Of a stretch of DNA of 55,109 bases, positions 3,027 to 55,109 are shown piece after piece (the first letter of the stretch is position 1; each line of letters begins with the position of its first letter). This DNA is from Dimorphilus gyrociliatus (taxonomy: Eukaryota > Animalia > Annelida): contig CAJFCJ010000074.1 of NCBI GenBank assembly GCA_904063045.1, positions 25,515-80,623 of the forward strand. The letters are read 5' to 3'. Under the pieces are notes generated by a model. The model was not told the DNA's origin. It saw nothing but the letters and a program-made list of their open reading frames with translations, and did no database searches. The translations under genes and the position numbers were made by a program.

Positions 3027-3308
3027 TCTGACATTGAGAGACAATGAATTTATCGAGGAGATAAGCATTGAATTACTAATGAAATATCTTTAGTCTTTTT
3101 TCTTCTCTCTCTTTTTCTCAAGGTAGTGTTACAAGTTGTGATAAATAATGTAATTTCATAATTAATATTTATTCTAAAGAATAATTAAATGCTTTTCAAT
3201 TCTAATATTCAATTTTTATTCAACAAAGTCGTGCATTTAAACTAATTATTTCTGCCTCTCTCTCTCTCTGTTCCTATCTATCTATCTATTAATCTATATA
3301 GTATCAAA

Positions 3309-6300
3309 ATGATTAAATTGAAAGAATACATACTTTTCTCGCTTAATTTAGCATTAAAATTTCTTACAGAGTGTATTACAATAAATTACACCTCATCAGA
3401 CCTTAAATTTTCTATTGATTCAATAGAAGATGATAAATATTTTAGATATGGAACAGTGGTAGTTGAAAATGTAAATAATTCAGAGTTCTATTACATTAAA
3501 TCCGATGGCTGTAAAGGAACAAATAGTTTAGTTCACAACCTGTGTTCATTCATGGGCTATGATAAAATTCATGTTGTGCACAATTCTTGCCAACCGAAGA
3601 ATGGTAAGTCAGAAAAAGAGAGATGGGAAAAACAACTTTTCTTACATTTTTTTCCTTGTTTTCTAGATAACGGAAAATTGATAAATGATCTTCTCCTTCA
3701 GCCATGCTGTTCAATGTAAACTGGAATTTTTTACATATATACTGTATAGATGCGATAGAAAAGTCCATAAAGTTTTAGTTTAAGTCTAGCTCTAACCTAG
3801 CCCTGGATTTTTACATTTTCTAGCCCATTTTTAGTTAAACTAAATCCAAACTAGTTAAAATTTTGAGAATGGACGTTTTTCTCTCGACATATATACATAT
3901 ATATATATTTATACTTGAAATAACCCGACCGTTTTACAAAGGAATGTTACTCCAACAATCACCAACAAATCTTTTGTTGTCATTTGTTTAAAATGCTTCA
4001 AGAAGAATTCTACTTGTAAATTCTTTAACAAATTTGGATTAGATTCTTTAACAATAAATTGACTTTCAGATATATATTCACTTAAATATCCAACATTGAG
4101 TATATATCAACTATTTTTGAGAAAGAACCAACAGTCATTCCAAATATTTAGTAATGAGACTAACAAACATTTTTTATGTAAACAATCTCAATTCTATATC
4201 TCGGAAGATTCTTTACATACATTTTCAACAAAGAAGGCAATTTTTCTCCAATCGACTGACTTTGTATTCAAAATTAAAAATGGAATAGACACCGCAAATA
4301 CATTTTGCTCTTTTCAAGATATTAAAGGTTTGCCTATTTATTGGCGAGATAATAAACAATGTTTATTTAAATATATTTCAATAACAAAGATATTCAACTT
4401 TTACCTTCAAATAATTTTTTTCTATCGTTTTTCCAAATGAATGAACCCATTTCGGATCATAGTTTGATAATGAAGTCAAAAACGCTTGGATATTTACCTT
4501 TTAGCTTTGCTAAAACGAATAAAGATAAAATTAATAAATGGCTGAGGAGGTTTTTTGATAAGAAAATGACAAAATTACAATCAACTAAGGTAGATTTGGT
4601 AGTAGAGAGAGAAATAAAGGAGAGATTTAGGAATACTACTCAAACATAATAAACAAACAATCAATACAGCCCTAAACTCCAACAGATATCCATAGGATTT
4701 TGTAATGAATCTTTCAACTTTAATTATCTACCATCAAACCGTTTGGCTTTGGGAAACTGTAAATGGGACGGGTCCTATCTAGAAGGTTGCATACTTTCTC
4801 AAACGTTATCGGAATCGACAATTTATTCAATTATAAATATTGAAAGTCTAAGAGAAACTGGTATAGTTAATTAATTTTCAAAGTTCATATTTTTTCATTT
4901 ACAATGGATTCAGATTCTTTGTATCGGATTGTTACTCTGATCAATAAATTCATCTACAAAAGTGATAAGGATAAACCGAACGAAATAATAGGATTCGTTG
5001 AAATTCTCGAAAACAATTACTACTCACAAATTCCATTTCAAAATTTAACATCTGATAAAATTGCTTACATTTGCCAATATTTTGGTTATTCTTACAGTAC
5101 ACTCCAGTTTAAAATTCTTGAAACATGTTCGCATGATTCAGTTGATAACTCTATATGTTGGCCGAAAGGAGTGAATATAGATACCGAAAATAACCTCAAC
5201 TTTACTATAAAATGTAACCGTGCAACTAATAAAAAAGGTTTTCTTTTCATGATAAAATTATTTTTTCCATTAAAAAAGGTTTCATTACTTGTTTAGCTTG
5301 CCACCACAAGTACTACTCGTTAGCAGACAACTCAACTATTTTCGATATTCACGATAATTGCTATTATTACTTTCACGCTAAAAGAAATTTAAGTATAATT
5401 GAAATAAGTTCCTTTTGTCAAAAAAGAAATCTTTCGATCTTTGACAACGCATTCGCTTTCTCCGAACTATTCTTTCATACATTTGTTAAACATGTAAAAC
5501 CAAACGTTACAGCAGCGCCAAGCAGTTAAGCAATGTTATTTATCTTCTTTTCAATGATAAATTCATGACGTAAATGTTGGGGGATAGCGGATAAAGAAAC
5601 GTCACTGTTTGTGAGCAAATAGTTAATAAGCCTATGTGCAAACTTTCTATAGACAGTCAATTCTAACCGTTTCAAAAGTAACATGGGGACGTTTCTATTC
5701 CGGCATTCCATTATTTTTTCTTTCAAATATTTAGTGCTTGATGAAAAATTCCTAAAAAGAAAAAATCGCACAGTACTAACAACCTCAAATAATTACCCTG
5801 AACAATTCATAATCTATGATTTGCACTCTTCTTGTGAAAAGAGCTATTACGATCATAGTATGAGAAATTTCATTTTTTAGCATCCTTTTTTTTAAAAAAA
5901 GAAAGAATTAAAACTGAATATTCAAGTGTTAAATGAAATTTTCCAGTGTTCGAGAAGCTCACCACGGTTCCATCAATGTGTCTAGAGAGGAATATATATT
6001 CTTCTTATATTGAAAGTTTTAACTGTTATGAAAGATATTACGAATTTTTTTGTCAGAGACCTTCCTGTAAGTTACAACTGTTATTTAATAAAAATAGAGC
6101 ATAGCATTTGGGAGAAATGGGGATTGGATGTCGAAAGGAAGCATTTACTTTTTGGTTTTTGTTGTAAGCCTATGATAATTTACATTTTTAGACTATAAGG
6201 AAGAAAGAAGCCCTTTGAATTCTTTGCCAATTGAAATTATTAGCGATGTAGTATTTTTATGCTTTAGAGAGAATGTTTACATTAATAAGATGTACGTCTG

Positions 6301-24987: not shown

Positions 24988-26007
24988 TTAATATTGTTCA
25001 CATATGAAAGTTTGATTTCGAATTTCGTTGCATAACCTCAGTTGAGAATCTTCTGTCTTCATGTAGGATATTATGCTCAGTGAGTGGATAAATTTTGCAG
25101 AGATTTTAAAATTTTCAGTATAATCCAATAGAAGTGATAGGGTTGATATTTGAAATTGAACACATGTATGTGTATCTTTGCCACGTAGTGCAAAAAGGCT
25201 TCCAAAGCATCCACTGGGGGCTATGACTTCTATCCGAGGTAAGGTACATGCCAGTGGACCTATGACATGTTTTGCATATTCCTCAGAGTCGTCTAAATCA
25301 CCATATGAAATTTGAATTAATGGTAATTTGTTTGATAGAACAGAGATTTCACCCGATAAATCATAGATTTGATTATGAGATTTCTGTCCAGTATCAATAC
25401 AATTTTTACTTGAATCCTTCTCTTCAAGACATACTGTTGATATTAAACAGTTACAAATGCCGTCCTCAAAACTGCTCAGATTATATTTGGTGTCATCAAA
25501 GAATTGAAATTTTAGGAGATGAGCTTGCGAGTTTCTAATTGTAAGTTTCATATTTTGGGAACATTTTCCAGAATATTTCTTCATCTCTTGTAATTCTAAA
25601 TCATTCAGATCCTGATATTTTATATTTGTGATTGCATAATCAAAAGGACCACCAGGAGTCTTTATCTTTATATTCTGTTCCACGTCATTATCAATTTCTG
25701 TAACATAGTTGTTGTCTTCACCGAATGAGCATTTAAAATAAAATTGTCGTCCATTTTGAATTGGTTGAATTTTATATGTTGAATTTTTTAATTTGTTATA
25801 AAAGAGAGCTTCTTGGAAATTTCTAAACACAGATTTTGACTTTCCATATTGAAATATTAAAAGAAAGGAAACAATAACAACAAGTAAATAGCAATAAACC
25901 TTATTTGTATACAACTTGGACAGTTGGCAAGAGAACTCCAACAAATCAAAGATTAAAATGACAACTTGTTTAGAACAATAATAATCAATTTCACAAATAA
26001 TCAACAA
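24988..26007 (-). CDS. Secreted or membrane-anchored protein with a stand-alone Caspr/neurexin-IV-type fibrinogen-like domain; start uncertain
   Basis: TYKIQP...FYFKC...VTEIDND, ELQEMKKYSGKCSQ, CNC...C and KLPLIQISYGDLDDSEEYAKHVIGPLAC follow the Caspr-family pattern LPVxQVxxGDT...GPLxC; hydrophobic stretch YCYLLVVIVSFLLIF near the N-terminus. Confidence 0.65.
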   Translation of the reverse strand: MLIICEIDYYCSKQVVILIFDLLEFSCQLSKLYTNKVYCYLLVVIVSFLLIFQYGKSKSVFRNFQEALFYNKLKNSTYKIQPIQNGRQFYFKCSFGEDNNYVTEIDNDVEQNIKIKTPGGPFDYAITNIKYQDLNDLELQEMKKYSGKCSQNMKLTIRNSQAHLLKFQFFDDTKYNLSSFEDGICNCLISTVCLEEKDSSKNCIDTGQKSHNQIYDLSGEISVLSNKLPLIQISYGDLDDSEEYAKHVIGPLACTLPRIEVIAPSGCFGSLFALRGKDTHTCVQFQISTLSLLLDYTENFKISAKFIHSLSIISYMKTEDSQLRLCNEIRNQTFICEQY

Positions 26008-42230: not shown

Positions 42231-43395
42231 ATAGGGGTGAAACCGTACCCATTTTGGGTGAAACCGTACCCATAAAAATATTAGGTTTTTTTAATGTTAT
42301 TAATACTAAAGAAAAGTATATACAATACTAAGAAAATGATAATAGATTAAGACATAACTTTGAAAGATAAAAGAATGGAAAAAGTGAAAAAAAAGAATAT
42401 TATGGAGTATAAATATCAGATGTTTGAACTAATAATTCATCTGCCAAAAGCCCTCCAAGTCTATAATTTTCTCAAATTTCAAATATTTTTCTTTCTATCT
42501 CAATATACTGCTTTTTTTGGAACTTGATAATCTTCTTCTCAGACATAAGCTTTTCACAGATAATAGCTAAATCAGCTTCTTTCTTCAGTTCATCAAGCAA
42601 CCAATAAAATGATCCTTTAGATGGTACTTTATTATTCCATCCTCCCACACTGTTATTAGTCCTTATGGATAATCCATATATAGACCAATTCTCTGATTTC
42701 CATAAAGAGTTCATAATCCAAGTTGCTTCAAAATATTCCAACAAGTCTGCAAATTTTTCTTTTTCTGTAAGTTGAGATTTCAATCTGAAATATGTTGGAG
42801 CAATGATATGAGCAGGCAGAAAAGGTAAAGCCATCAGCTTTCTCATGTCTCTCCAGTCCTCCCCTTTCTCCATATACTTTCCAGAGTATCCAAGAGACTT
42901 GAAGGATCATAATTGTAAAGACAAACCATATAGGTAAAATTAAATGTTTTACCTGTATTTTCCTATATATTGCTTGTATAAAATGGAATATACATCCATG
43001 AATTTGTGATTCTGGATATATTTTGGATACAGCTCTCCACAGACCCTTCTCAAAATCAATTGTTATCTTCTCAGGCTGTAACATACCAGTCATGTTTCTG
43101 ACACTCTGAAGAACGAAACATTCATCTGAAAGTAGTTAAATCTAGAATGATAATCTTTGCCCAAATATAATTATCAAAAAAAGCTTGACTTTCAAAGTAA
43201 ATTCTTTCCAAAGTGAAAGTTAACTTCAGTTTCTTCATTTTTAAAATGGCTGTCAGTTTATATTTTAACAGTCTTTTTATTTTTGTAGCTTCCATTATTA
43301 TAATTCTAAATAATAAAATTAAAAAAATATAATATTTTTATGGGTACGGTTTCACTCAGGTACGGTTTCACTCGGGTACGGTTTCACCCGCTACC
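42231..43395 (-). mobile_element. Internally deleted MULE (Mutator-like) element with TIRs, 9-11 bp TSD and an intron-containing transposase remnant
   Basis: GGGACACCTGA at 42220-42230 and 43396-43406; inverted termini built of GGGTGAAACCGTACCC units; IDFEKG...HGCIFHF, LMALPFLP, IRTNNSVGGWNN; 55-bp GT-AG intron 42898-42952 joins RKIQ|SLGYSGKY. Confidence 0.92.
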
Positions 43396-43647
43396 GGGAC
43401 ACCTGATATTAACCAATCATTCAATTGGTATGTTATGAGCAATTTCTTTAATAATCTGAAAATAGTCTACAGTATATGGTTATAAATTAACCATTTAACC
43501 ATTGTACATGAAATATAGTAAAAGAGTTCAGACTGTCAACAGCTGTCGAAATGATTAGAAATCAAGAAAATAAAAATGGTAATTTTAAATATTTAGCTAA
43601 AAGTATTTATTTTTAAACTACTCAACTATTCAACAGAAACTTCTGAA

Positions 43648-46600
43648 ATGGAGGAAGTCAAAAAAATTTTCACCCAGTTTGAAAGATTTGAAATGGTTTT
43701 TTTTCTTTTTTATATTTACAGTTCGATGTATTGTGATCGTAGGAAAACCAAAATGTTTTATACTAGACTGTTAACATACGAAGTCAGCTGCGCACAATGC
43801 TATTTATAACCGCTCATTTAAAATAGTTTTAGGTTACGTCTATGCTTTTCTAAACAAGGTTTTCTAAGTGCATACTATTATTTTTAAATTATAGAAAATA
43901 AATTCTAAAAGTTGTCATCTCTTTTTTCAGAATGAAAATTCAAAATGTACTCAACTAATTGTTTTAAAATGTAAGCATTATTTCTTTAACTAACGCCTCT
44001 TTTTAAGTTTTTATCTTTTAACATAGATAAGAATGAAAACAGGAAGTTTTTTAATATTGAAAAATTATCTAATCTATTTGATACTATTGAAGAATGGATT
44101 ATTGATACAAAAAGTGAATTCGAATTAAAAATTCGAAATTTAAAAAGAAACTCAACTGAGATTGATGGTTTTATCTTCCTTCTTCTTGTATCAGAAGAAG
44201 AAAATAGATCTGATTTTAAAATTGAGAATAGTGTATTAGGATCGTTTGACAATTTAAAATGCATGATTAATAAGAATAGTTCAGAAGAATTTCGTAATAA
44301 ACCGAAATTATTTATCTTCCCGAAATATTCAAAAGGTTAGTGAATGCTAAAAAATAACTGTCAATTTAACATTCTGAAAAAACTTTTTCAGTATCATCAT
44401 CTCTATCAGCCCAAACAGATTGCAGTAGTCAGAAAGACATTGCACAATCATTAGAAACTTGTTCAATTCAATCATTTTCCGATTTGAACATTAACTATTT
44501 TGATGGTATTTACTTTTCAAAATGGAGGTATTTTATCTTTTTAGAAATATTGAATTTGTATATTTTACAGAGAAATGGATGAACAATCAAGCGAGAAGAT
44601 TGTTTGACGAATTTAATATTTTCCATAAAGAGAATATATGCATTCATGAAAATGGAAATAATACAACAACAACTTTCTACTCAACTAGCGAAAATCTATT
44701 TAAAGATTACGAAAGTACAAATACACTGGTAGCAGAAGGAAAAAATGTTTTTCTCTCTTTTGATTACTTTAAAAGTCTGAATGAAGAAAACACAAACACA
44801 GAATGTGACGATGTTAAACTAAGCAAAGGTATAGTTTTTTATTCATTTGGTCACGTGATAGATTTCACTTTATTAAAATTTTTAGCTGTAAAAGTTTTTT
44901 ATGATAATGTCAGAAAATCAGATTGTTACTGCTATTTAAAAGCAAGGGAAATATCTCTCCTATTTGCTGAAAGTATATGTTATTTCATTCAAATATTCAA
45001 GTCTATCACTAATCGTATTCCCTTTTCCCTCAATCAAAGTCTCTTCCATTGCTGGACAATTACAACGGAAGTCTTTGGAACAAACGTCAGCTTATTTATT
45101 TAAAAAGAAAGCGGAAATAGAACGTTCAAGTTGTTCAAAATGCAAAAGTTTAATTGATGCATTCAAAACAAAGATAAATAATACATTTATGTTCTGGAAT
45201 GAAGACAGTATTAGAATTCTTCTCTGGTTGGATGACAGTAATAGACCCGGCAATGGGAATTTTAAAACCAACTACGACTTTGGATTCATTCTAAACGGAA
45301 TCCAACAAGATACTTTTGCAGAAACTTTACTAATTGTTACATTGAAACAAACCGGAAGTTGTAATTTTCAAAAAAGACTAACAAATCAAATTGGTTGGAT
45401 GGTTGTACCAGCATTCAATTACAGTTCGGACCATATTGAATTATTGAATAATGGCTTACTAATTGAGCATCAATCACTTTATGTTCCTCTCTTCCAAACA
45501 ACAGGCACCAATTATTATTTTCCAATCAAAGATGAAGAAAACGTCGACCAAGAATGGACACTTCTCCTATGCATTCAAGCAGAGATGATTGGACAAGAAC
45601 TTATCGGTTGTCATTTATCAATTAGACAGGAAATGAATAGCATTAATTCATTGAAAAATCTCATTTATTTGAGAGATTTTAAATTGAATTTAATGAAAAG
45701 TTCTTCATTTCAAATTCAAATTAATAAAGATTTGAATTTTAAAATCTCTTCTTTAGATTATCTATTGAAAGGAATTATCTTCAATCAACAATTCTATATT
45801 GATAAGACAAAAGAATTACATATATTCATTGAGAATAACAACAAGAATTTGATTTTGGATGATAATTTTCCAATATTGCAAAGGTTGAATAATGATATTA
45901 ATTCATTTTCAACAGCCTATTTTACTGGTGAAAAATTAATTTTAAATGCTGAAAATTCATTGGTTGTCCTACCGGAAGGATGTTTTCAAAAATCAACTGT
46001 TGTTTCAATACAAGAGAATTATTCATTCAAAAATAACAAAAATTGTACTATACTTCAAAGCTCTGTCGATTGTAAACCGGATGGAGAATTTTTTGAGCAA
46101 AAAACTGCAAAATTATTGTTTAATCCAATTTTTAAATCTAAAGATATTGACGTAGGGGAATTTAAATATTTAAAATCTGATTGGATTGTTGGCAATTTGA
46201 GGCATTTTTCCCGCCACGAGCTTTGTAACAATAGTAAGGATGGAGTAAGATTCAATCTTTATTCTTCAATTGAAAAATTAGATAACAAAACTTTGAAATT
46301 TTTTGTTTATTTTACTGTGAAAAGCAAAGTAAGTGATATCAATTTTTGTTGAATTTCAACTATCTTATATTTTCTGTTGTCGCCATTTTTTTCATTTTAT
46401 TCCCCAGAATAACACAAATGTTGAAATGGAACAGAACGAAATAACACTTCCATATAAAAATAATGCGGTTCCAGGTCAGAATGGCTTAAAGCTTACTGTC
46501 AAAGGGAATAATTTTGAAGAAACCTCTTCTAAATCCTTTAACACCTTATTTCAAAGTTTTGATAGAGGTTTTTATTAAAACAATGATAAAGAATACAAAT

Positions 46601-49167
46601 ATTATAAGCCTATATCATACACATTATTGATTTTATTCAGGTAACGACTTTCCTTTTGTTGTCTTCATCCAACATGAAGAAATTGACAAAGGAGAAATAA
46701 TCATTGAAAGTGGAAACTTAAAAAATAATGAGTTTGTTTCCTACGATTCTATAAATTGGAGATTTTCGAATATTTTCATTGACCAATCAAAGAACACTTC
46801 TCCAAAAGTGTGCATACTAAAATATTATTCAGAATATGGTGAGATTTAATAAAAAATTGTGATTGCGTTATTAAATTCTCTACTGTCCATCTTCCTAACT
46901 TACAACTCTTTTTTTGTTTTTGTTTTTAGAAACTCAACAACTCCAACACGAGGAAAATTTTGATTGTTCGAAGAAAATTAATGAAATATTAAAATGTTTG
47001 AATGATGAAGTAAGAACGCAGATTTGATTTTTAAAAATTAACAATAATAACCTTTACAGAAATCTTATAAAAATAATGGAAGTAGGGTTTTCTTCCTTTC
47101 TACAGCAAACACTATTGGAAGAGATAGTTCAAATTTGATCAATTTTTTCAACTTTTTGAATTTTCATACTCATACTTTGAATATCAAAGAAAATCTTTCA
47201 AGCCAAATTAAACATATTTTAAAGGATGATACAATTTCTAAATATGGTTTAATATTTTTTATACAATTTACCGGAAATGAAAAAATTGATAAATGTCAGG
47301 AAATTATTGATCAACTAAATATTGAAGAAGTTAGCGACCAACCTAAAATGTTCTTTTTTCAATTTTATACTAAAGGTGAAGGTTAAATTTTTTAAAAATG
47401 TCTTTTTTTTTTATTTCGAGTACTTTTAGTTTTTCCTAAAAATGAAGAAGATTTAAATGAAAAATTTAAGAATGTTTCACTCTCTTCCAAAACACCTGCA
47501 CAAGCATCAAATGATGACGATGATAGTTTGTTCGTGAAAGCTGACAAAACAACTAGCAATAATGTGCCTTCGTTACATAACATGAAAAATACTTTTGTTA
47601 GAATTGAAAACATTTATGGTAAGTATTGTCCAACTTGAAACTAAACTTAGTAATACCCAATTTTTAAGGATTATGTTATGAATGCATATGAAAACAATAA
47701 TTACAGATGACGTTGAAAATCTTGAAAAATGGGGAAGTTGTTTTATTAGAGGATTAATATTATCAATCAAATACTGCAACTACTGTAAACCTTTGAATAA
47801 GATCTTAGAATATACTCAGTTGATTGTTGAATCAAAACTGGAAAATATTTTAAGTGACAAAGAATTCGAATTAAAAACTAACGATTTCAAAAATTACTAT
47901 TTCCTACCAATTTCTGTTATCAAGTCTGAAAATTCCTTATTTAAGGAATTTAAAAAATTTGGTATAGTTCATTTGAAAATTTAAATTTTTAAAATATAAT
48001 TATTGAAATATATTCATTTTTTTTTAAAAGATAAATCACCTCGTATTACTTTCGAGTTGCTGGAGAGAAAATTTAGTAATGATAATGAAGTTTTAGATGG
48101 AAAGGTTTTTCTAACATAACTCAGTAACAAATTTAATTTCTTTCTTTTTTTCACTGTTTTCAGAAACTCTACTATGAATTTAAAACTGTAAAAGTTGTTA
48201 TTTTCAACATTTCAAAAAGTAACTTTCAATTGGATAGTTTAATTATCTAAAAAGACAAGAAAGCATTTTTTTTGTTGTTTTTTTTTATTATTTTGCAAAA
48301 CCTTTCAGAGAGACCAGGAAGTGAGCTGGACATTGACAACCTGTCAAATTTGTTCAATATTCTCGGGTACCAAGTACAAATTTGGCCTCAATGTAACAAG
48401 GATAATTTGATTCACAAAATAAAGTTGCTAAAAGAAGAAATGGAGAATTTTGACTGTTTAATATTCTTTGTGATGGCTCATGGTACTAAGTATGGATTCA
48501 AATGTAAATTTTCTTTTTAATAGAAGTTTTCTCAAATGTTTTTTATTAATAAGTTTTTTCTGTCATTTTAGTGTTGGACGACCATATTTTGGATTTTAAG
48601 GAATTTTTACGCCATTTTAATGACAAATGCCCAAATTTACTTTTAAAACCTAAACTTTTCTTTTTTAATTGTTGTAGAGGAAGTAAATAGTTTTAAATAA
48701 TTTATTTTTTCATTTTAAATTGAGCGATAACTAGGAATTTTTTCATTTTTAAAATAGCAAATTGGCTTTCCAATGAAACCAATAAATTCGACTTGAAAGA
48801 CACTGGGAGTGCATCAAATACACCTAAATCTGATGATGCAGAATGTATATCGGACTGCGGTAGGTTTTTTTCGACAATAGAAGGTATTGTTCTTTTTTTC
48901 TTTTGAGTTCTTAATTTATCATTTCTATTGTTACGTATTTTCTTGTCAGACCATGTCAGTTTACGTTTCCCAACTCTTGGAAGTATATTTATAAGATGCT
49001 TCATTATTTGTATGAGAGTCTATTCACATAGAGAATCCTTATCCTTAATTATGGAGAGAACCTACAGTCTACTGAAATGGAAAATTCATGAATACGAATT
49101 GGCATTGTACAGACAAGTTGCCGTCTCTGAACCTTCTTTGGAAACATTCTATTTTTTCAGCCTATAG
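43648..49167 (+). CDS. About 1390-aa multidomain caspase: pseudo-caspase, ZU5/UPA-like x2, pseudo-caspase, putatively active caspase
   Basis: Exons 43648-43695, 43931-43970, 44027-44335, 44392-44505, 44571-44972, 45040-46328, 46408-46567, 46641-46838, 46930-47009, 47060-47381, 47430-47618, 47707-47961, 48031-48104, 48164-48218, 48309-48503, 48572-48682, 48758-48883, 48950-49167. All are GT-AG and phase-compatible (4185 nt). Motifs NKPKLFIF, DQPKMFFFQ, WGSCFIRGL, FFVMAHG, KPKLFFFNCCRG, FSTIEDHVSLR..LGSIFI. The first exon is the least certain. Confidence 0.82.
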
Positions 49168-50600
49168 GCAAAGAATGAGTAGTGTTTTGTCATCATGAAA
49201 ACACTAAAAGCTAAAGAATAAGAATCTTTATTCAAGTTGTTTATTTCTAAACTGAACATTTTTATCCATTGAGAATTGTTTTGCTAATGTAAATTTTTGG
49301 ATTGATAATACTTATCATCTGTCTGCATTCTAAATTTGCAAAAATGATTCTGATTGGAGAGGAATGTTTGAATATACAAATTTTCATTAAACGCATTCAA
49401 ACAAAATTCCTATCAATCAATTAAAACTCGCTTCTAAACTGTCAGCCGCTACATTTGTGTATAAAGTGTCACTGTTAGTTGTTTTAGCTATAACAACATA
49501 ATCAATGTTTTAATAATAAACTCTCTATTTTAATATTTTATGTCTACGTCATAAGATAATTACATTCATTAGAAAGTTGATTGAATAAGATTTTTCAATT
49601 TACATTGAGATATCTTATCATATTTCTTTTTGGTACAAAAATCTTGTAACTTTTTACTAAAATCCTAATCTGAACTCTTCATTCATAAAAACACTTGCTC
49701 CTAAATCTACACTTTTCTATTGAGGGTATGATCTCCTCCAACTCTATTTTAGGTATCGTTTAGACCACGGTATAGAAATGATTGTACTCAACCCAATTGT
49801 TTCTTTAATTAGGCAGAGAAATTTGGATGCGATAGAAGACATCCACAAATTATTGCTTTAGTTCACTTGATCAAAGGTTTGCAAAGATAAAATGTCACAA
49901 TTTCATATTTCATACATAAGAAATACTCCATCGAACAGGGATACTTTTCCCTTTTTGGCTGCCATTAATGATATTTTGAAATTCCAATGAATTCTTGGCA
50001 GTAACTGCATTTCCTTCTCCTCTATCTCTACCATAAAATCTTTCATTAACATTTGATACAAAGAGGTGAACTCCTTTTCCTCTGTCTACTTTCTAAAGCT
50101 ATTTGTGTGCATCTGTTTACATTTTATCTATTAAATATAATTGTGAAGTTGAAAAAGTAGAACGATTTTGTTGTAGGAATTAGTTCAAATCAATTTTATA
50201 TCTAAAGTAGTTTATAGGAATTGATATTTTTTCAAACGTCCCAGAAAAATATCTCAATCGCCTGACAAGAAATTTATACAAAATTCCAACTTTACTTTTT
50301 TAAATTGTATCTTCACATGAACAAGTAATGCTAAAACAAACTAGAAAGTTAATCTACTATAATTGGAAGGCTATAATACTGTGCAATGAGTCACTATGAC
50401 ACTCTTTTCTAATATCAACTTTTAACCTTTAATGATAGAAATGCTGATAATCTGATTACAAAATTATCAAATATCCTATTAACCTATTCATTAAATGCAC
50501 ATAAATGTAAGCCTATAATAAGATATATATATATATATCCCACTAGTTTTTTTATTGGTAATATAATTTTGAATTTTGTCTACAAATTGAAATGAATACA

Positions 50601-52642
50601 ATGAAGACAATTATTATTCAGATTCTACTGTTTTGTCTCTGTAAGTAAACTTTAATTGATTTATGTTTCTTATTATATATGAATTTCTATAATTTTAAAA
50701 TTAGAAATACTTAAATGTTTTCATCAAATAGCTATGATCTTTAATTATTGTTCTTTTTTTACAACATTTTACAGCTCTTCACTCTTCTGATGCTACACTT
50801 TCCCCATTTATCTGTCCCGTTGATGACCAACAAAGACCTATAAATGGTGTGTTTAAGGATAGCATTTTATGTGATACTTATCATCATTGCATAAATGGAA
50901 CTGCATTTCTAAGGAAATGTCCTCCTGGACAGCATTTTAAAATTATATTATCAGACTGTAGCTTTTCTGCCTGTGTTGATCCAGAATTATCAGATTGTTC
51001 AGAGACTCTAAAGGCATCACTACCTTCTCAAAAAATACGTCAATGTGAGACAGGTGAAAAAAATTCGAATAATGGTGAACAATGTTTTACTAGAGTAAGC
51101 GAATGTAGTTCTAATAGCAATGAAACAGTTCCAAGTTTTCTTGATTGTAGAATTTACTATCACTGTAGAAATGGTGTTTCCTGGCCACAGCAATGTCCTG
51201 ATGGCTATTATTATTCACTAAATGTTAATACTAGAGAATGTAAAGCTGAAATGTGTGTACCATTTGAGGTTGCCAGATGTCCATTGGCAGGTGGTTGGTC
51301 TGCATGGTCACAATGGGGTGACTGTGAACCAGAGTGTGGTGGTTTTGGAATTGAAACAAGAAGAAGGGAATGTAACAATCCTCCTCCTCAGAATGGAGGA
51401 GCTGAATGTCCTGGTGTTCCGATAGAAATAAGAGAATGCAAACCACCTGATTGTTCAGGGTCTACAAGCCCAGCATTTATGCTTTCTTTACAGGAAAATA
51501 CAAATGTAAATAACGGAAAAATTCCATGGAGTTCTATTGATGTGAATGATGACAATCTATATAATAGCAATAAAAAGGAAGTAGAGATTAAAAAGCCTGG
51601 AATGTATTTTTTCTCTATGACAGCAACAACTCTAACAAATACTTGGATGTCCCTAGAAAACACTGGAATTAACATAGGTCTGTCAAAAGAGATACATTTT
51701 AGTGACAGACTACTCACTGAAACTATTACAAGAAGTGGTTTATTTTCCTTAAGCAGCTTATTTAAACCAAGAGTTGTACACCTTCTAAATGATTCGAATT
51801 TGATAGGTAGCAATGATGGAAAGGATACGTCCTGGTTGGGTTTTAGATATGAAAGCAATAGTTTTGTTAGTGCTGCTCTTGGTGTAAAACAGAATTCTCC
51901 AGGTTTTTTATCTCTAAATACCATATTTTTAAATAGAGGTTTCACTATTTCAAACAATAACAAGATTTTTACATCTAGAGAAGCTGGTCTATATTATATT
52001 AATTTTGGAAGTGGAATTGAGGAAGGTAATAGTGAACACAACATCATTCTTTCTGTTGCACGCTATATGGCATCTTACACAAGAATATATTCTAAACCTC
52101 CTGGCATTGTAAATCGGCAATCAGCATATCCTTCATCCAGAGGATTTCTACAAGACTTACATGAAAATACTGTTTTACAATTGTCAGCAAGTAATCACGT
52201 GACAAGCTCTAAATTGGAGACATATCTTCTTGCATTTAAAATAAATAGCTCTTTTCCAGCTGTATTTCTAGTTAAAAGTCATCAGGGACAGAGTCAATGT
52301 CGACCAATATTTGGAATACAAGGATTACAGTTTGAAAATGTACTGGTGGATACGTTGAATTCATGGAATACTACAGGATATTTTACAGCCCCCATAGACG
52401 CAGCCTATTTTGTAGAAGTTAACTTGGTAGCTATAAGAACAACAGAACTTATTGTTGAAGTAAATGATCAAGTAGCTTTCAAGTTGAAACATGTAATGAA
52501 ACATTCAGGTGAAGCGGAATTATCAACCAGAACAGCTTTATTAAGGTTAAAGGAAGGAGATATTTGCAAAATAAAGTATAGAGGTTGTCTAGAACATATG
52601 ACTATGTCAAGTTCATTCACTATATTTGCTATTCAAAACTGA
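50601..52642 (+). CDS. Duplicate copy of secreted protein 1 (CBM14 x2, TSP1, C1q x3)
   Basis: 597-aa ORF translation identical to 32715-34508; exon 1 50601-50640, intron 50641-50774. Confidence 0.92.
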
Positions 52643-53359
52643 TGTAATTGTAAATTACTAAATCTATTATTACTTATTTCTTCAATTTCAATAAATAACA
52701 GCTTTAGTTTTTATGCCAATCAGTATTTTAGTTCTGCTCTGAGGCCTAATGTTTTACATATAAAATCCAAAAAAGAATAGTTGTTAGTGAATCTGTTTAG
52801 AATTAAACTATGTGGACGCGACAGACAATGTGTATGTATTTGAAGTTTTATCCAGCTCTTAGTCAAACCCACTTAACAATAAAGCAAATGTTCATTAAAT
52901 TTCCAAGCCCAATTTCAATCTAAACTGTAACCACAAAGTTTCCAAACAGTGGACATTTTCTGTCAACCCCAGGTTATGCTATCAAATGGGTGACTTTATA
53001 AGTATTTTTGTTATAATCTTAGGTTTATTTGTATCCAATTAGTAGCAGATGACACTTGATAAGTGTGCAGTCAGAATACAAAACTTACTGTCATCAAGGT
53101 TCATCTGCTACATGTGAATAAAAGATGTGCAAAACTTGTTAAGATAATACATAAATTGTCTTTGGTATAATTTAGAAAATCAACAACACAGTCACAGAAA
53201 ATGATATCAATGATAACTTATCATTTGTTTTTTTTTAAAACTAATTTTAGACTTTTAAATAATTTTTTATGATTATAAATCACTTTTCTTTTATTGAAGA
53301 TAATACTTTGAATTTCACTAGAAAGCAAAAATGAAGATTATTGATATCATTCAAATATG

Positions 53360-54320
53360 ACTGTTATCGGACCAGGTGAAACCATACAAATTAGGTATCT
53401 TATGGTCAAGAAATCAAGACTTTAATTAAAGAGAAGAACCAAGAAGGCTTATCTATGGGCAGATTTCAGAGATTTGTAATATTCCAAAATCTTCCATACA
53501 ATACATTATTAAACCAAATAAAACCAAGAGTGGAGGTGTTGGGAGACCAAAATCTCTGTCAATTAGAGATAAAACCCTCATGAAGAGGGGAATAAACAAA
53601 CTGAAGAAAGAGAAACAGAGGGTTACAAGTACAAAACTGGCATATGAATGCAACCTTACTGTTTCAAAAACAATGATTCAAAAAAAGCCCTTAAAGAAAT
53701 GGGAGGAAAACTTAAAAAAATCTCTCAGCACCCCCCTCTCAAGAAGAAAAATAGACTTCAGCAAGTGGAAATTTGTTGAGGGTGATTTGAAAATAAAATA
53801 AATTTGGACAATGTAATCATTTCTGATGAATGTAGATTCAGTTTTCATGGGCCAGATAGCTGCCAAACCTGGCAGTTTAATCCAGAAAGGGAAAACTTAA
53901 GATGTTAACAATCAATGGGTGGTGGAAGAGTCATGATCTGGGGATGTATGGGACCAGATGGTTTAGTGCTCATTTCTAGAATTGAAAAAAAATATACAAA
54001 GGGATGGTACCTGGCTCTCTTGAAAAAAGAGGTCATGTCATTCCTAAAAAAAGATATAGGAAGGGTTTCATTTTCCATCAGGACAATGCTCCTTGCCACA
54101 AGACCAAAATTGTCCTAAAATATTTCAAGACTGGAAAGTGCGCAGTCTTACCATGGCCAGTTTACTCCCTAGATCTCTCTCCCACAGAGGATGTATGGCA
54201 TTTGCTAAAGAATATGGTGTATGATCACAGTTTAGCAAAAAGGAAATTTTGTGGAAGTGTATCAAAGAAAAAGTTGAAATACTGAACAAAAGATGGAAAA
54301 AAGACTTATTTGCCCTTCAC
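53360..54320 (+). mobile_element. Duplicate of the degenerate Tc1 at about 31030-31990
   Basis: ORFs 53580-53801 and 54004-54285 identical to the left-arm copies. Confidence 0.85.
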
Positions 54321-54740
54321 AACTCATTGCTGAAGAGAGGACTGGACTGCATCCAAAAAAATGGCTTGAAGCTAAAATATTAAAATTTTGTAAATGTACA
54401 TTTAATTAAAAATTAAAAAATATACAAAATATAAGGATATACAGAAAATTTTCATAAGTAGCTCATAAAAATTTCAAAAAATTTCTTTTTCCTTGTTTTA
54501 ATGTTTTAAAATAAATATTCTATTTTTCTATCAGTTCCAGAACTACTCAAGCTTTGATCTAATCTTATCTTATCCAATTTCCTACCTTGTTTATCTAAAA
54601 TAACTGAAAATAAAAATATGCAACATCCACAATCGATTGATGGATAATGATAGGATTACTATTTCTTATTAATTAGATAAAACTCATGGATTAGTATAAA
54701 ATTGGAAAATTTTCTTTCATTTTAACATTAAAGGTGAAAC

Positions 54741-55109
54741 ATGAAACTTTTCACTTTTAGTTTATTGTGTAAGTAATTTATTGTTTGTTTAGTTTTTTCT
54801 GAACAAAAAAACACCATTTATGCTATTTTTAACATTTTAACAGTGTTGTCATTTGTTGAATGCAAATGCCCTCCATTTTCTTGTCCTCTTAACTCCGAAC
54901 TGAAACCTCTTGATGGAACCTTCCGTATTCCAGTTTATTGTGGATATTATTATCATTGTAGAAATGGTACTGGCCATTTTCGACAGTGTCCGCCTGGACT
55001 GTTTATTCCATTTTGTTTAAAGAATCTAAGTTTTCCATGTGCCAGAAACCGAATAAGGGTGATAATTGCTTAGAAATAAATTCTACATATGCCACTGAAT
55101 CAGATACCC
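54741..55109 (+). pseudogene. Duplicate 5' part of secreted protein 2 with a 1-bp frameshift (real or sequencing error)
   Basis: Exon 1 54741-54768, intron to 54843; GGACTGTTT here vs GGACTGGTTT in the left copy shifts the frame after CPPGL and stops at 55073. Confidence 0.7.

Follow-up and report, generated by a model that had tools for sequence, protein, structure and literature searches.

Human PIDD1, NLRP1 and CARD8 are armed by self-cleavage of ZU5 or FIIND domains and act via adaptor domains (death domain, CARD) that recruit a separate caspase. PIDD1 consists of leucine-rich repeats (LRRs), two ZU5 domains, a UPA domain and a death domain, and cleaves itself at two His-Phe-Ser (HFS) sites. 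The FIIND of NLRP1 and CARD8 is composed of a ZU5-like and a UPA part, is cut at SF|S and is followed by a CARD; the two fragments are reported to stay bound until a second event. UNC5CL, in which a ZU5 domain precedes a death domain, is likewise reported to be self-cleaving at HFS. Here, an HFS motif was analysed in a caspase gene of the annelid Dimorphilus gyrociliatus, located on contig CAJFCJ010000074.1 of assembly GCA_904063045.1. The window, that is, the whole stretch of 55,109 nucleotides analysed, corresponds to positions 25,515 to 80,623 of the forward strand of this contig. Coordinates given below are window positions and refer to the plus strand unless stated otherwise.

Based on conservation and structural modelling, the HFS motif is proposed to be the active site of a self-cleaving module of the ZU5 superfamily that forms part of a caspase protein with several domains, a reading to which a probability of roughly 0.6 was assigned.

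The HFS motif and the exon that encodes it

The codons CAT TTT TCC at 46203-46211 encode His-Phe-Ser in the frame of the open reading frame (ORF) 44964-46352. This ORF holds all peptide strings quoted in the initial annotation of the locus, and the HFS motif reported there was confirmed. It is situated in a long coding exon of 1,289 nt (45040-46328), defined by frame continuity and by the transcript joint 46328|46408. Residue numbers refer to the 430-residue translation of 45039-46328, in which the motif is His389-Phe390-Ser391. The tripeptide conforms to the pattern [H/S]-[F/L]-[S/T/C] of ZU5-, FIIND- and GAIN-type autoproteolytic sites. From sequence, conservation and structural end-points, its residues are predicted to be P2, P1 and P1′ of such a site, with the cut between Phe and Ser.

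The window is AT-rich (∼29% G+C) and introns are very short. Frames were checked exon by exon and searches were made with single exons. With a donor after 44828 and an acceptor before 45040, the long exon is in frame with upstream exons at 44008-44335 (caspase-like, lacking the catalytic His and Cys), 44392-44505 and 44571-44828, the splice sites and frames of which were read from the sequence. Downstream, the frame runs stop-free through 12 further exons to a stop codon at 49165-49167. Spliced transcript contigs from public run X1 map to the locus. A contig of 2,307 nt carries the joint 46328|46408 and, as far as 48948-49300, eleven more GT..AG introns, each 50-91 nt long; a second contig covers 45977-46187, and both are free of mismatches. 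Mismatch-free transcript contigs thereby span 45977-46328, including the HFS codons. The gene is an intact, multi-exon gene that is spliced and expressed.

An exhaustive search with the long exon yielded 13 homologues, with E-values down to 9e-139. Two of these are annotated D. gyrociliatus proteins, P0001 (859 residues, 60% identical) and P0002 (1,962 residues). The other eleven are ORFs of 377-608 residues on Logan contigs, most likely representing the equivalent long exons of paralogs; the five contigs that were looked up come from SRR233722xx runs. A word-index protein search with the exon gave no match, and the same type of search with the family alignment recovered one already-known member alone. 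The family alignment comprised 14 sequences, 17-60% identical, with 343 scored columns. The short downstream exons of the window gene were left out of this MAFFT alignment, in which they misaligned as separate rows. The long exon is conserved end to end in the paralogs.

Phe390 is invariant (14/14) and constitutes one of 8 invariant columns among the 343. The next column, ranking 22nd of 343, contains Ser in nine sequences and Cys in five, and nothing else. A hydrophobic P1 residue without exception and a conserved nucleophile at P1′ were thus found, while the column of His389 is variable, with H in 8/14 sequences followed by G, G, N, S, Q and R. This x-F-[S/C] conservation is the pattern expected of a working site. 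It agrees with mutagenesis of CARD8, Nup98 and PIDD, where neither the buried Phe nor the Ser after it could be spared and the preceding residue (His or Ser) had only a slight effect (PMC3210808).

The absence of a Pfam family for the exon and the empty word-index search could be taken to mean that HFS is a chance tripeptide in a non-ZU5 region, or that the ORF does not represent a genuine coding exon. This explanation is contradicted by the spliced contigs, the 13 homologues, the invariant Phe and the ZU5 top matches of two structure models (see below), and is hardly credible. With an invariant Phe and a next column restricted to Ser or Cys, the alignment places HFS beyond chance.

The ZU5 fold, the position of HFS and alternative readings

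An AlphaFold2 model of the long exon, calculated from the 14-row alignment, had a predicted local distance difference test score (pLDDT) of 75.6 and a predicted template modelling score of 0.75, with pLDDT values of ∼90 across residues 290-400. Using VIA-align, residues 282-400 best matched the ZU5 domain of ankyrin-B (6m3q_E; Z 11.1, root-mean-square deviation (rmsd) 2.6 over 109 residues). Further matches of the model were ankyrin-R ZU5A-ZU5B (3ud1, Z 9.7), ZU5-ANK (3f59, Z 8.3) and ZO-1 ZU5 (2kxr, Z 7.0). The GAIN domains of adhesion G-protein-coupled receptors (GPCRs) came next at Z 6-8, their sandwich superposing on residues 277-401 (Z 7-8). A second AlphaFold2 model, made from residues 215-520 of paralog P0001, was confident in the ZU5 part alone. 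Its top five VIA-align matches were all ZU5 domains, i.e. AnkB (Z 10.3), AnkR (9.1), ZO-1 (8.1), ZU5-ANK (8.1) and UNC5b 541-687 (7.6), and every Foldseek row obtained with it at a probability of 0.82-1.00 was a ZU5 domain. In the ESM Atlas, the shape search aligned a bacterial ZU5 cluster on residues 285-403, and the feature search gave a weak lead, with a ZU5 cluster at 0.75. According to both AlphaFold2 models, VIA-align and the ESM Atlas, residues ∼285-390 (45891-46208) are predicted to form a ZU5 beta-sandwich, in line with the ZU5-like domain ending in His-Phe-Ser that had been annotated initially.

The position of HFS in the fold was derived from the end-points of alignment ranges and the DSSP string of the model, rather than from residue-by-residue alignment. 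In the window model, the alignments to ZO-1 ZU5 (residues 1-118), zebrafish Gpr126 (up to 827) and GPR110 (up to 566) all stop at residue 390; the ZO-1 domain was solved with a bound partner peptide in 2kxs. For the crystal constructs of ZU5 (3f59, 6m3q) and the single-chain GAIN structures, the alignment continues as far as residues 397-401. With the paralog model, the alignments to GPR56 (5kvm_A, up to 382), Gpr126, GPR110, GPR97 (up to 249) and Lphn3/latrophilin-3 (up to 854) stop at the invariant Phe, which is residue 125 of that model; the cleavage nucleophile of GPR56 is Thr383 (PMC11374949). UNC5b 541-687 aligns to residues 22-136 of the paralog model, bringing the invariant Phe within ∼1 residue of UNC5b Leu677, a residue equated with CARD8 F296 (PMC3210808). 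As the end-points of cleaved or truncated structures fall at 390, Phe390 would be P1 and Ser391 P1′. The ZU5, GPS/GAIN and Nup98 autoproteolytic domains have been argued to be one superfamily (PMC3482391). The structural modelling suggested as a check in the initial annotation thus puts HFS at the predicted scissile-bond position of the ZU5/GAIN superfamily, at the end of the sandwich and before the last complementing strand.

According to DSSP, HFS opens an 11-residue strand (389-399), separated by a one-residue break from strand 383-387. The long strand right after the predicted cut (Ser391-Ser399, 46209-46235) has its counterpart in the final strand of the ZU5 constructs, the ZU5 and GAIN alignments extending to 397-401. 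The two halves are therefore expected to remain associated until a second event occurs. Release of a fragment by constitutive cleavage, as originally proposed, is therefore unlikely.

A caspase-mediated cut at the HFS bond was also considered. Caspases need Asp at P1; this candidate was ruled out because P1 is Phe.

Several observations weigh against a self-cleaving ZU5 module. The structure models were built from only 14 sequences. Pfam detected no ZU5, UPA, FIIND or death-fold domain in the long exon or in parts of it, even when E-values as high as 10 were allowed. Pfam ZU5 was found at E ≤ 1 in two of the 14 family members (best 5.9e-4), which is marginal, and its gathering score was not reached (19.5 bits against a cut-off of 21 for PF00791 in paralog P0007), the fold itself being recovered in the two models. 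A sequence search of the PDB with the ZU5 segment alone gave no match, and a search with the family profile gave a weak, equally marginal match to ZO-1 ZU5 (E 0.41). Foldseek returned no match at E ≤ 0.001 for the window and paralog models, and nothing usable when the whole 430-residue window model was compared with the PDB. In run X1, no transcript contig covers 43600-44745, leaving the 5′ part of the gene model unconfirmed, and contig depth falls ∼25-50-fold upstream of ∼45880. Finally, we infer all of the chemistry and activation steps, cleavage included.

The nearest structural matches, ankyrin-B, ankyrin-R, ZO-1 and UNC5b, are non-cleaving, and to our knowledge none of the ZU5 domains of ankyrins, UNC5 and ZO-1 self-cleaves. 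The domain could thus be a true ZU5 fold with a scaffold or docking role only, as in these proteins, in which HFS is kept for packing and no cut takes place. The absence of His in 6/14 relatives and the shortness of the domain, with few residues between a conserved Trp and HFS, would fit such a role. However, the occurrence of only Ser or Cys after an invariant Phe at 17-60% identity is a nucleophile signature rather than one of packing, and the motif falls on the scissile-bond position. The residue before Phe also varies in CARD8 and NLRP1 (SFS), and Nup98 tolerates substitutions there (PMC3210808). A scaffold-only domain was therefore considered rather unlikely, and a self-cleaving module is retained as the preferred reading.

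The drop in depth bears on another alternative. Contig depth was 0 at 43600-44745, 0.35-9 at 44746-45891 and 144-346 from 45892 onward, so that the region preceding the ZU5 domain may be missing from what the abundant RNA encodes. This step might reflect 3′ bias, cross-matching of paralogs or an internal start. Four of the nine transcript contigs are only 90-95% alike and show non-splice 'joints' (45293>45460 and 45491>45882), and are therefore probably paralog transcripts. If the abundant product started in or after the long exon, from an internal start near 45880, ZU5/HFS would rarely be translated together with the caspase, and the motif would be of little consequence in vivo. The depth step and the presence of probably paralogous contigs are compatible with this, but contigs cannot show transcript ends, contig depths are not comparable and 3′ bias could equally give the step. 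Moreover, in an RNA starting near 45880 an ATG in the correct frame would come no earlier than 46426, and ATGs in other frames are present, while the upstream frame is intact and the exon is conserved over its whole length in paralogs. An internal start of this kind is improbable, and translation of the ZU5/HFS module in one protein with the caspase is preferred.

Neighbouring domains, caspase regions and genomic surroundings

Upstream of the ZU5 domain, exon residues ∼168-283 (45540-45887) form a UPA-like beta-sandwich in the model. By VIA-align, this segment best matched the UPA parts of rat NLRP1 FIIND (7crv_B), UNC5b 688-828 and CARD8 (7jkq_B 322-445), each with Z 8.4. Human NLRP1 (6x6a_G 1214-1350) matched at Z 6.8 and generic sandwiches at Z ≤ 6.4. 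Since a Z of about 8 is near the background of the tool, a UPA-like domain standing before ZU5 is probable rather than certain.

An N-terminal beta-rich domain, residues ∼48-145 (45180-45473), was delimited from the strands of the model and the alignment to 3ud1, and is possibly a degenerate ZU5. The only support for this kind is the two-domain alignment to ankyrin ZU5A-ZU5B (3ud1, Z 9.7, rmsd 12.9). BLASTP and profile-profile comparison between the exon halves detected no internal repeat, so that the notion of two ZU5 repeats, including the upstream repeat of the initial annotation, is unsupported by sequence. Near the junction between the first beta domain and the UPA-like domain, the long exon encodes a His-Gln-Ser tripeptide (HQS; CAT CAA TCA at 45468-45476) in the frame of ORF 44964-46352. 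With ranks of 100, 211 and 212 among the 343 columns, the HQS columns are not conserved, and Phe never occurs in them. The suggestion that HQS is a degenerate site did not hold, given these columns and the Gln in place of the essential buried Phe. HQS could be a relic of an older site; nothing supports activity.

The long exon is followed by three exons encoding ∼145 residues (46408-46567, 46641-46838 and 46930-47009, from joints and frames), which had been read earlier as 'UPA'. Together with the rest of the long exon they make up ∼185 residues after HFS that are beta-rich by eye. Three strands follow HFS in the window model, and the downstream ∼160 residues of the paralog P0001 model have pLDDT values below 50. 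Pfam scans gave no UPA, FIIND or CARD match after HFS.

A middle caspase-like region without catalytic His and Cys is encoded by exons at 47060-47375, 47430-47618 and 47707-47961, as judged from translations and weak tblastn similarity: 47060-47374 resembles the catalytic caspase exon (E 0.016) and 44257-44334 (E 0.14). Neither this region (47060-47961) nor the upstream caspase-like region (44008-44828) gave a Pfam match among the exons scanned. The C-terminal caspase is encoded at 48164-48218, 48309-48503, 48572-48682, 48758-48883 and 48950-49167, supported by Pfam, translations and transcript joints. Pfam Peptidase_C14 was detected in these exons with E-values of 1.9e-9 (38 bits), 2.2e-8 and 1.2e-4, and the catalytic His and Cys codons lie at 48479-48481 ('MAHG') and 48673-48675 ('NCCRG'), respectively. 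A caspase predicted to be of the working type thus follows ZU5/HFS in one frame. Single-exon Pfam scans, which did not include 44392-44505, 46930-47009, 47430-47618, 48031-48104 and 48758-48883, showed no death domain or LRR. The initial annotation had placed HFS immediately upstream of a caspase tandem. Caspase-like regions are indeed found downstream in frame, but ∼185 residues lie between HFS and 47060. Similarly, the C-terminal UPA/pseudo-caspase/caspase fragment it envisaged is consistent with a caspase carrying His and Cys in the same frame, but a UPA domain was not demonstrated after HFS.

A caspase follows the module on the same strand in all six other members examined (P0001, P0002, L001, L003, L004 and L005). 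The region before the module differs among members: the window gene has the caspase-like region without His and Cys, P0002 has strong LRRs (Pfam E 9e-14), P0007 has LRR-like N-terminal repeats by eye and the paralog locus L004 has a NACHT ORF upstream. On L004, a NACHT ORF (492-2465; E 1.8e-9, 38 bits), a ZU5 module (3131-4447, with RFS) and a Peptidase_C14 ORF (5150-5515) are found on one strand within 5 kb, an arrangement that suggests a NACHT - ZU5 switch - caspase gene. Residues 1-600 of P0002, preceding the LRRs, gave no Pfam match, and an undescribed N-terminal domain may sit there. Residues ∼740-859, at the end of P0001, have the look of a transposase helix-turn-helix by eye, and the dead caspase-like region found in the middle of the window gene is missing from this protein. 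Probably, the public annotation has fused or skipped parts of the gene model here.

The caspase gene is located in a unique segment of 13.2 kb flanked by a near-perfect inverted repeat (30236-36058 and 49299-55109). Between the arms, identity is 100% over a block of 3,416 nt and 93-100% in other blocks. The right arm starts ∼130 nt past the stop codon of the caspase gene and reaches the window end. Each arm carries a chitin-binding/TSP1/C1q-type gene, e.g. ORF 50849-52642. Either an inverted duplication of recent date or an artefact of the assembly could account for this repeat. A short distance upstream of the caspase gene, two overlapping ORFs of 121 and 133 residues on the minus strand (42472-43093) appear by eye to be DNA-transposase fragments.

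Comparison with self-cleaving modules and proposed mechanism

The window family resembles PIDD1 in having the same tripeptide at the end of a ZU5 fold and caspase activation as the output, and in the LRRs that precede the module in P0002 (Pfam) and P0007 (by eye). In contrast to PIDD1, the window gene has a fused caspase and dead caspase-like regions, and no death domain was found in the exons scanned; with the caspase fused directly, no RAIDD-type adaptor would be needed. The family also differs in having one conserved site and an apparent order of beta domain, UPA-like domain, ZU5 and unknown domain. The domain order of a PIDD1 orthologue (LRR - ZU5 - ZU5 - UPA - death domain) was not found and sequence similarity to PIDD1 was not detectable, so the window gene is not regarded as a PIDD1 orthologue.

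With the FIIND of NLRP1 and CARD8, the module shares x-F-[nucleophile], a dispensable residue before Phe and a long strand after the cut. In addition, the upstream domain of the exon best matches their UPA part, and a NACHT ORF precedes the module on L004. It differs in that a caspase takes the place of the CARD, Pfam FIIND is unmatched and some paralogs have Cys instead of Ser. UNC5CL, from general knowledge, similarly combines a single ZU5 carrying HFS with a death-fold, cell-death output, but has a death domain and not a fused caspase. The GPS of adhesion GPCR GAIN domains (HL|T, HL|S) has the same succession of His, hydrophobic residue and nucleophile; fragments are held together via the strand after the cut, and in the alignments Phe390 marks the end of the N-terminal fragments from cleaved receptors. 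GAIN domains, however, are extracellular, have a helical subdomain A and free a tethered agonist rather than a protease. Structurally, the module is closest to the ZU5 domains of ankyrins, UNC5 and ZO-1 (Z 7-11), with which it shares the core motif around C-x-P-x-G, but in UNC5b the tripeptide is absent, with Leu at the Phe position (PMC3210808). In a 2024 survey of metazoan NLR inflammasomes, FIIND-CARD was encountered only in vertebrate NLRP1-type proteins (PMC11508797). No description of a direct ZU5/FIIND-caspase fusion was found in the literature searched on ZU5/FIIND and caspases.

In the proposed mechanism, the hydroxyl of Ser391 would attack the carbonyl of Phe390 after folding (N-to-O acyl shift), and the ester would then be hydrolysed. 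Strain in the backbone would be maintained by the buried Phe, with His389 assisting as a base. Cleavage would yield an N-terminal chain of ∼650 residues, containing the caspase-like region, the beta domains and the ZU5 domain, and a C-terminal chain of ∼700 residues starting at SRHEL, containing a beta domain, the dead caspase-like region and the active-type caspase. Both chains would stay together, as the strand after the cut would complete the ZU5 sandwich. Activation would require a second event that sets the caspase-bearing chain free or clusters it: the N-terminal chain could be destroyed or unfolded, as reported for NLRP1 and CARD8, or the protein could oligomerise in the manner of PIDD1.

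Paralogs with NACHT or LRRs before the module suggest that sensor, switch and executioner are placed on one polypeptide. More tentatively, the family may represent a single-chain counterpart of the inflammasome or PIDDosome, consisting of a variable sensor (NACHT, LRR or a dead caspase-like decoy), a ZU5 switch with a Ser or Cys nucleophile and a caspase. Autoproteolysis would arm such a protein and loss of the N-terminal chain would trigger it, bypassing any death-fold adaptor. New with respect to PIDD1 and the FIIND proteins, on the present analysis, would be a fused caspase where those proteins carry an adaptor domain, and the Cys nucleophile of some paralogs; otherwise the module would work like these systems. 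Two features vary within the family: the region preceding the module, which is NACHT, LRR or dead caspase-like, and the residue at the cleavage site, which is Ser or Cys. If the proposed reading is true, a switch wired straight to a caspase would provide a minimal system for cleavage, fragment retention and control by N-terminal loss, and the logic of 'sensor - autoproteolytic switch - protease' would have arisen or been rebuilt outside vertebrates.

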